Positions 44,474-48,779 of a DNA stretch of 64,000 nucleotides are shown piece after piece. The DNA lies in contig CP075496.1 in NCBI GenBank assembly GCA_021613535.1, positions 1,116,001 through 1,180,000 of the forward strand, given 5' to 3'. The first letter of the stretch is position 1. Every line of letters starts with the position of its first letter. The DNA is from Adineta vaga. Lineage: Eukaryota > Animalia > Rotifera. Both the position numbers and the translations under genes were made by a program. The notes under the pieces were generated by a model. The model searched no databases. It was not told where the DNA came from and saw only the letters and a program-made list of their open reading frames with translations.

Positions 44474-45318
44474 TTAATGTTTGCTTGCAGTAACTGAACT
44501 TGATGAGTGAGAACTTGAAGATTTTTCAGTTGTTGTTGCTGTTGTTCCAACAACAGCAGCGATACCAGCAACGTGTGTTTCACCTTGAGCTGTAGCTTCA
44601 GTTCGAATTACCGTTGTTGATGTTGATGTTAATAAGCGATTAGCATCTTCAGCTCCCAAACTAAAATTTCATCAATAAAATTCATTTCAATAAATAAAAT
44701 AACTTACGCAGCAACTTGTTGAGTAATTGCATCAACTTTAGCATTGGCTTGAGCTTGTGCTTCACGTAAAACACCCATTTTCAATCGATTTGCTTCTTCA
44801 TTCAAATCATCAATACGTTTTCGTGCTTCTTCAAGAATTAATTCTTGACGTAAATTTAAATCTTTTTCTAAAACAGCTAAATTTTGTGCTTTAACTGTAT
44901 CAAGTTCTTCAACATATTTTTGTAATTTATGTTTATATTCTTCTTCAATAGCAGCTGAACGTGCATTAGCATCAGATAAAAGATTTCCTTGTTGAGCTTG
45001 AGTTTCAACAACAATTTTAGCAATAGCTGCAGTAACTTCTTCAGAGATTTGTTCTGTTCGGCGACGAGAATATTCATCAACTTGTTGATGAGTTGTACCT
45101 ACACGTAGAAAAGAAATTTTTCAATAAATAATAATTCAATTATCGATTGATTTACCAAGTCTGCTCATTAAATCAGCCATTTTTTGTGTATTTGCCATGC
45201 TAACCTTCGATTGAGTTTCAGTACTAACAATTGATTTAACTGCAATATTTTCTGAAACAGCTGTATGAGCTACTGCTGAACCTGTAGTTGAAGTTGCTTC
45301 ACGTGTAGTAGATGACAT
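44474..45318 (-). CDS. 246-aa hydrophilic protein: Ser/Thr/Val-rich termini flanking a ~130-aa charged amphipathic helix; CAHS/LEA-like candidate
   Basis: Exons 45318-45156, 45098-44708 and 44660-44474 (741 nt, in frame, canonical GT-AG). No C, W, F or P. TATA (CTATAAATA) at ~45456-45464. Confidence 0.8.
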
Positions 45319-46736
45319 ATTTGACAATCTTTTTATGAATTGAAATTGAAAATTTGAATAATCTAAGAAAAAACAAGAATGTTCCAGAGATAAATTTTAT
45401 CTTTCGTCTTGAAAAGAATCAATGAAAAATGAATGTTTATGGACGAATGTTCGACTATTTATAGATGATTCCTTTCACTGTTATCTATCGTACAATGGAA
45501 GCTTATTTCTCTTCTTGTTACACATCAAACACATCTTATCACACATATTTGCTATGGCAATCTTTCACTCTCTCTCTTTCTTTCCTACTGGCTTTTTTTT
45601 ACAATGTACATTGTCGGAATAACATTGTTGAGAAATGAATAACAGACATATCTTATCTTATTATTGGTTCGTTGTGAAATTTTTTTTCTAATGAATGAAT
45701 CAAATCTTAACAAGCATGTGAACAATAACAATCGATGTTCTTCGAGAAAATTCGTTACGAATAAGTCACGAGGTCAAACAATACATCTGTCTTCTCAGAG
45801 GAAATGTTCTGCTTTTGTTTTTTCTATAGATGAATAATACAATAACTTACTCACGATCTCTGTAAAATGGTTCTCGTATCCGTTTCTACCGGTCTCTTTA
45901 AATGGGTAACAAGAGTAAAAAGTATTTCTTCGTTTGATGATAAGAGAAGTAACTGAGTACAAGGAAAGAAAACTTTATCTTAAGTATATAACTATCGAAG
46001 AGCAATCTATTACATGAATTGGTGATTCAGTGTCCAAATTCCAAAAGGAAAATAAAAACAGTATTTTCGATGGTATGGAGAAAAAAACAAGATATTAAAC
46101 ATAGAACTACTCGAATGTGCTTCAATTCCTCTACTACATAGAATGAATCATTTGGCTGATTCTTGTTTTTAGTTGCGTCGTTTGATTATTTATTAGAAAC
46201 ATCTATACTCATTCTGTTTCTTTTCTTTTTTTTACAATGATGTTGTCGGTTAAAAACAACCAATACCAAGTTCAGATATCCCTCCTAACTCTTTGTTATG
46301 AGTCCTGCTTTTTCTTTTTTTCTCTCCTTCCATAGACTAGTCATTCATTCATTCATTCATCACCACGCAGAAGAAAATAGAACGACGTGGCGTGTTTTTT
46401 TCGTTCTGTATCGAGAAAGAGAAATAGTCGAGTGGGTATAGTCAACATTCTTGTTCATACGACATGTGAATTTTGAAAATAACAGAAGTTCTATCCCAAT
46501 GATGTTCATTGATAAACCCAGCTCTCTGTGGCAATAGTCGTTGATGATAATTGCACGTAGCAGTGCATTGGCTGAGGGATAAAAAAATTTTACAAGAAAA
46601 TAATTCATCTTGTTCGTTTTCTATTTCATCGTATGTTTTTAAAGTGTACTTATGAATAGATACAAGCACATCATAGACAAAGAAAAAAAAAGAAGAAAAT
46701 TCGAAGAGACAAAAAAAAAAGATCGTATTCGAGTTT

Positions 46737-48188: not shown

Positions 48189-48779
48189 ATGGCAACTTCG
48201 TGTAATACTCATGCCTATGATGGTAAATTACGTGCTAAATGGTTTGAAATTCGTCCCATGTTACTCGAAAAATATCTTCCGAATTGTCTTTCATTCGATG
48301 ATACACTTAAAGAAATCGAACAATGGCTCGATAAAAAATATTTTAATGTTAAACGAATCGGGCGTGCACGTCGTTCATTAAGAATATTAGCAACTCATCG
48401 AAAAAGTAATTTCGATTCAAGAAATGAAATTGATGTCGAAGAACTTTTACCAATTCTTTGGAATCAAGTGAAAAATCAAGAAGATATTCATGATACATTT
48501 TATGAACAATTCTGTGATATTACCGGAGGAAGTTGTTCACAGGGAAGATCAACAAGACTCTTTCAATTTCTATTTCTTTTCGATTTACCAATTGAAGCAC
48601 CGAAAATAGATGAACAACAAGAAGAAACAACAAAACCATCAACTGAACAAGAAAATGTATCTGAAACAACAAATGAGAATGGATCAGTTGCAGATGAATC
48701 GAAACTTCTAGAAGTGACTAATTTAGAATCAAGTGATTTGTCTTCCGATAAAATCGAATCCATAGATGTTTTAACTTGA
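48189..48779 (+). CDS. Intronless 196-aa protein with CSQGRSTRL motif and acidic tail; function unknown
   Basis: Clean ATG-to-stop ORF with host codon style. Helical domain ends in FCDITGGSCSQGRSTRLFQ. Confidence 0.75.
   Translation: MATSCNTHAYDGKLRAKWFEIRPMLLEKYLPNCLSFDDTLKEIEQWLDKKYFNVKRIGRARRSLRILATHRKSNFDSRNEIDVEELLPILWNQVKNQEDIHDTFYEQFCDITGGSCSQGRSTRLFQFLFLFDLPIEAPKIDEQQEETTKPSTEQENVSETTNENGSVADESKLLEVTNLESSDLSSDKIESIDVLT

Follow-up and report, generated by a model that had tools for sequence, protein, structure and literature searches.

The gene described here lies on the minus strand (45318..44474) of a 64,000-nucleotide stretch of genomic DNA from the bdelloid rotifer Adineta vaga (assembly GCA_021613535.1, contig CP075496.1, positions 1,116,001 to 1,180,000 of the forward strand), referred to below as the window. 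It has three exons, and its product of 246 residues is a member of an unnamed family which the bdelloid ancestor already possessed. The family is defined by a unit in which a helix of about 155 residues lies between two strand-prone flanks, a layout also predicted for the CAHS proteins of tardigrades, although homology with CAHS is not supported. The reading preferred here is that the long-helix family is a convergent analogue of CAHS, forming antiparallel dimers that would network through their unlike ends. It is based on structure prediction and on analogy, and we hold it tentatively, with a probability of roughly 0.45.

To our knowledge, CAHS proteins are treated as an invention of tardigrades only. 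If the proposal is true, the family would be a concrete target for the study of cytoplasm protection in bdelloids, being conserved, multi-copy and transcribed, and having the three working parts of CAHS D with no kinship to CAHS; it would be a directly testable candidate in rotifers. It would also offer a second natural example from which to learn which CAHS features (helix length, amphipathicity, unlike sticky ends) gelation and protection need. For the protection of the cytoplasm in bdelloids, which is achieved without trehalose, the literature invokes mostly LEA and heat-shock proteins (PMC10809525).

The protein and its family

The exons were searched one by one, and P0214, a colinear orthologue of 246 residues which is about 78-88% identical to the gene per exon, stood in for the complete protein. 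With exon 2 as the query, an exhaustive HMMER search gave 168 cluster representatives at E ≤ 1e-3 and 82 at E ≤ 1e-10. The named matches were all bdelloid, ie A. vaga, A. ricciae, A. steineri, several Rotaria species and Didymodactylos carnosus. The family core of 125-129 residues (typically about 127) aligns nearly without insertions or deletions down to 28% identity. It is accompanied by an N-terminal flank (N-flank; V.V.S..) and a C-terminal flank (C-flank; S.TTT.I.T), and exons 1 and 3 are colinear with the same proteins. No Pfam family was matched at its cut-off by the three exons or by ten relatives, and no paper describing the family was found in literature searches.

At least 13 loci of the family are present in the A. 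vaga genome. The nearest kin of the gene are L002 (C1:10652288-10652674) and L003 (C1:10704469-10704855), with core identities of 85% and 82%, respectively; they are separated by 52 kb on another chromosome, where they occupy opposite strands, and the three-exon structure is shared at least by L002. Environmental assemblies contain numerous contigs of about 1 kb that encode family members in full length. One of them (L017, described below) is demonstrably spliced and the others were taken as transcripts from their length, which suggests, though only indirectly, that family mRNA is abundant. In two predicted proteins among the matches to exon 2, P0002 and P0003, the family domain is preceded by an unrelated N-terminal portion, which in P0002 is rich in Cys and His and resembles a B-box zinc finger; these could be genuine fusions or the product of merged gene models.

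An earlier note on the window, made by reading the sequence, had pointed out that the product lacks Cys, Trp, Phe and Pro, and the translation indeed contains none of the four. Ala (14%) is its most frequent residue, followed by Thr (12%), Ser (10%) and Glu (10%). Complete absence of Cys, Trp, Phe and Pro was found in only 3 of 58 close relatives, and the family median is 1.2%; full absence is therefore a quirk of this copy and depletion a family trait. There is no hydrophobic signal at the N-terminus and the protein is of a cytosolic type.

The termini are rich in Thr, Ser, Val and Ala and contain two conserved segments; the earlier description of them as Thr/Val/Ser-rich and strand-prone holds. 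The N-flank (residues 18-41; 45196..45267, minus strand) has alternating Val, Ser and Thr, with about 1-4 bits per column, and V27 and S29 are conserved in at least 90% of the sequences. The C-flank (residues 197-207; 44594..44626, minus strand) is rich in Ser and Thr around a central Val/Ile pair, and S197, T201 and I203 reach the same level of conservation (at least 90%). Variable low complexity, again rich in Ser and Thr, is limited to the extreme tails.

Predicted helix and self-pairing

AlphaFold2 was run on P0214 with 81 aligned relatives. The model contains a single continuous helix over residues 42-196, with a predicted local distance difference test score (pLDDT) above 90, a beta hairpin over residues 8-39 (pLDDT about 52) and a disordered C-terminal tail. 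In the gene, the predicted amphipathic helix corresponds to 44627..45195 on the minus strand, a coding region that spans both introns. The uninterrupted helix of about 130 residues proposed in the earlier note is thus retained at the level of prediction, but its length had been understated. Averaged over the family, hydrophobicity and conservation each have their strongest signal at 98 degrees per residue, equivalent to a repeat of 3.67 residues (11/3), over the full length of the helix; the single-sequence peak lies above the 99th percentile of 1000 shuffles, and autocorrelation at lags 11, 15 and 22 agrees with the 3.67-residue period. The helix bears a narrow hydrophobic stripe with a repeat of 11/3 residues. 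Comparison of the protein with itself showed no significant tandem 11-mer sequence repeat, and the Atlas, searched by structure, yielded nothing beyond unspecific matches to long helices and the rotifer cluster to which the protein itself belongs.

When residues 40-200 were modelled as a homodimer, the median run had a score of 0.58, compared to 0.00 for the best of three controls. In the calibration of the method, 21 of 30 solved homodimers and none of 23 solved single chains attained the dimer mark. At least 96% of the contacts in the dimer model are common between runs, and the pLDDT of the partner is 88. The predicted contacts are antiparallel (116-116, 90-142 and 72-157), placing a dyad near residue 116. 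If the model is correct, two helices would pair over their whole length, and the intolerance of the core to insertions and deletions would be explained.

Likeness to tardigrade CAHS proteins

True CAHS sequences were obtained by scanning metagenome contigs with a degenerate DNA pattern of the CAHS motif. This gave 110 stretches, nearly all of them chance occurrences in unrelated contigs, and just three, each about 1 kb long, were taken further, namely L032, L047 and L107. All three carry full-length tardigrade CAHS open reading frames and come from the same kind of environmental assemblies as the rotifer family; both families are well represented there as contigs of this size. One CAHS contig retrieved 106 relatives, including Ramazzottius CAHS1, 2, 10 and 12 and CAHS 86272, 94205 and 77611.

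Like the rotifer family, CAHS proteins are about 240 residues long (medians 251 and 237), hydrophilic, devoid of a signal peptide and encoded by a multigene family. CAHS1, folded with the same pipeline, is predicted to have a single helix at residues 97-201 and a low-confidence hairpin at residues 206-217, ie the same dumbbell layout as P0214 at the level of prediction. The hydrophobic period of the CAHS helix is the same 98 degrees (3.67 residues). Antiparallel pairing with unlike ends, which is predicted for the rotifer family, is also part of the published model of CAHS D, in which antiparallel linker dimers with heterotypic ends polymerise via strand-strand contacts (PMC10949331).

By analogy, the rotifer protein may work as follows. 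Antiparallel pairing about the predicted dyad would set the opposite flanks of the two chains side by side, N-flank next to C-flank, so that each dimer would have unlike sticky ends. Such dimers could then link end to end via strand-strand contacts, as published for CAHS D, and build filaments or a reversible network when the protein is crowded or dried. Of all the steps in this proposal, protection during drying has the least support. On these models a CAHS-like mode of working is plausible for the rotifer family. The shared layout and helix period and the predicted antiparallel pairing, coupled with the lack of homology considered below, point to a convergent look-alike of CAHS, which was one of the two possibilities raised in the earlier note. 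There is a precedent for CAHS analogues that are unrelated in sequence, as EtAHS A and B of heterotardigrades are abundant, heat-soluble helical proteins which are analogous to CAHS and have no sequence similarity to it (PMC8582207).

Alternative explanations

Several points weigh against the interpretation as a CAHS analogue. The folding and pairing were computed for the orthologue P0214 and not for the joined protein of the window, and the strands of the flanks, the C-flank segment included, have low confidence in the AlphaFold2 model. The dimer calibration consisted mostly of microbial proteins, and long amphipathic helices pair side by side easily. When the sequence by itself was examined for a palindromic pattern of hydrophobicity or charge around the dyad, residue 116 was not singled out. 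Charged residues make up 32% of the rotifer helix compared to 51% of the CAHS helix, and hydrophobic residues 26% compared to 19%; a stably folded coiled coil therefore fits at least as well as a protectant that passes from disorder to helix. Finally, Rotaria magnacalcarata and R. socialis, which reportedly do not survive drying, have retained the family.

The last two of these points favour a constitutive structural coiled coil, ie a subunit of filaments or scaffolds in bdelloid cells that has no special connection with drying. The nearly fixed length of the core and the conserved hydrophobic stripe would suit such a protein, in the manner of a molecular ruler, as would the confident prediction of a full-length antiparallel dimer. 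PDB searches gave weak matches to keratin and to ATP-synthase stalks. However, no intermediate-filament or other structural family was matched at cut-off, the small, hydrophilic protein has Ser/Thr tails and lacks Cys for cross-links, and the many paralogues and environmental contigs resemble those of stress-protein families. We regard this explanation as unlikely, though by no means far-fetched. If it were correct, the result would still be a new and well-defined protein family that can be named and added to family databases.

A second alternative is that the helix coats the surface of membranes or lipid droplets, as group 3 LEA proteins, apolipoproteins or perilipins do, and does not pair with itself. 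An 11/3 hydrophobic period over 155 residues is a hallmark of such helices. Long helices with this period are found in apolipoproteins A-I, A-IV and E and in apolipophorin-III, and these gave the best, non-significant, PDB and Pfam similarities; the best PDB profile match of all was the weak one to ApoA-I (E 0.014). The earlier note had suggested comparison with LEA_4 and apolipophorin/perilipin profiles, among others. The three exons and ten relatives had no match to LEA_4 (PF02987) at E ≤ 10, and the scores with the Pfam Apolipoprotein family (PF01442), at 10.3 to 13.4 bits, are far under the gathering cut-off of 90. The rotifer protein also differs from apolipoproteins in having no signal peptide, no Pro-punctuated 22-mers and, indeed, no Pro. 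Group 3 LEA proteins, which are tied to drying, in bdelloids among others (PMC10809525), are likewise hydrophilic and form an amphipathic helix of 11-residue periodicity. Unlike them, the rotifer family has no tandem 11-mers, has conserved, non-repetitive flanks and is nearly fixed in the length of its helix. Surface coating would leave both the strand-prone flanks and the fixed length unexplained, the hydrophobic stripe is narrow, and in the dimer model it is buried. This alternative appears to us rather improbable.

The remaining alternative is that the family is genuinely, though very remotely, homologous to CAHS; homology had also been raised in the earlier note. An alignment of 81 family members (A2) was compared with one of 35 CAHS proteins (A4) using hhalign, which gave a probability of 0.17% and an E value of 0.34; with a second family alignment (A1) the values were 0.06% and 0.75. 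The best segment pairs the C-flanks of the two families. There were no cross-matches in either direction: the CAHS search returned only tardigrade names and no rotifer protein, and HMMER and profile searches with the rotifer family returned only bdelloid names among the named matches. In the rotifer family there is no conserved counterpart of the residues that are invariant across CAHS, namely D, F and R of RDxEFRK and the QK pair of the QK..LEAK block. The segment KDLNLRQELI had been said to recall RDVEFRKDLI of the CAHS core, and four of the ten residues are identical, but the resemblance carries no statistical weight and, as far as these sequences go, is one of chance; in the alignment of the two segments, the rotifer column opposite the invariant CAHS Phe is variable (0.9 bits). 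Pro and Phe are nearly absent from the rotifer family, whereas in CAHS a Pro-rich N-terminal motif is conserved in addition to the invariant Phe. A feature search by language model had ranked a cluster of 224-residue proteins, whose commonest phylum is Tardigrada, third at 0.88. It was rated a lead only, and was rejected as a sign of CAHS kinship when the profile comparison with true CAHS proved negative. Despite the similar overall length and layout, the Tardigrada-leaning cluster, the paired C-flanks and the 10-residue resemblance, descent from a common ancestor with CAHS is very improbable because of the hhalign probabilities, the lack of cross-matches and the unmatched invariant residues; the helices also differ in length by 50 residues (155 compared to about 105), and the two families come from different phyla, Rotifera and Tardigrada.

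Relatives outside rotifers

A long-branched clade (support 100) comprising P0148 (L018:98-1807) and P0250-P0275 lies among the rotifer subfamilies and shares the whole unit of flank, helix and flank. Its members have long C-terminal extensions, rich in Gly, Ala and Thr, in which the C-terminal end is conserved. The DNA of this clade is 63% GC, and its GC content at third codon positions (GC3) is 76%, compared to 9% in the mRNA of the rotifer orthologue; the clade is therefore not bdelloid. That this GC-rich branch might represent the heterotardigrade EtAHS proteins was considered and rejected. The printed EtAHS sequences, which were compared by motif and not by alignment, lack the conserved motifs of the branch, have hydrophobic N-terminal leaders and Cys, and look unrelated.

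A further member, P0039 (L019:8001-9770), is encoded on a 120-kb contig of the Joint Genome Institute. It has 589 residues, with a long low-complexity N-terminal extension, and is surrounded by long uninterrupted open reading frames, among them a choline-transporter-like protein of 1217 residues and IMPDH. The host of this contig is an intron-poor eukaryote with a GC content of 37-44%. Its IMPDH is about 42-67% identical to the IMPDH exons of A. vaga, and the nearest named species, which are 65-68% identical, come from mixed groups. Judged by the sequences of these contigs, the family also occurs in eukaryotes other than rotifers. The family tree is unrooted and gives no direction for any transfer. 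A bolder form of the CAHS-analogue proposal would be that bdelloids possess their own, sequence-unrelated dumbbell family which gels reversibly on loss of water, is shared with GC-rich soil eukaryotes, and may be a module moved between kingdoms by horizontal transfer; in this extended form we consider the proposal doubtful.

Gene structure and upstream region

The earlier note had described a three-exon gene for a protein of 246 residues, and this is borne out by the splice sites, by the colinearity of P0214 and P0211 and by the intron-free contig L017. Exon 1 (45156..45318, minus strand, as are all the features of the gene) begins with the ATG at 45318-45316 and encodes residues 1-54 and the first base of codon 55. 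Intron 1 (45099..45155) is 57 nucleotides long and intron 2 (44661..44707) 47 nucleotides, and both have GT..AG ends. Exon 2 (44708..45098) encodes residues 55-185, with partial codons at both ends, and contains the helical core that is free of insertions and deletions across the family. Exon 3 (44474..44660) encodes residues 185-246 and the TAA stop codon at 44476-44474. The codons split by the introns are GGT (Gly) and GCT (Ala). In P0214 and P0211, exon 1 is colinear with residues 1-54, exon 2 with residues 56-184, and exon 3 with the sequence from residue 186, the alignment of exon 3 extending to residue 246 in P0214.

L017 is an environmental contig of 980 nucleotides which encodes P0214 as an unbroken open reading frame of 246 residues and is about 88% identical to the gene at the nucleotide level. 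When the two are aligned, exactly the two predicted introns are absent from L017, and the end of exon 1 is matched. The splice model is confirmed because a spliced transcript of a close relative lacks precisely both introns. Judging from this contig, the orthologue of the gene is transcribed.

Reading of the sequence upstream of the gene revealed a TATA-like box, TATAAATA (45455..45462, minus strand), about 140 nucleotides before the ATG, and a motif scan placed TATAAAT at -145. The genome is AT-rich and contains many such strings, and in the paralogues they are found at varying distances from the ATG. The upstream regions of the paralogues gave no alignment when compared, and hence no evidence of a conserved promoter. 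For these reasons the box is only a candidate element, and the earlier note's description of the gene as TATA-driven is at most putative. The neighbourhood from 40.5 to 50 kb of the window contained no related or informative gene. The only sizeable open reading frame near the gene, at 48189-48779 on the plus strand, encodes 196 residues with an acidic tail rich in Ser, Thr and Glu.

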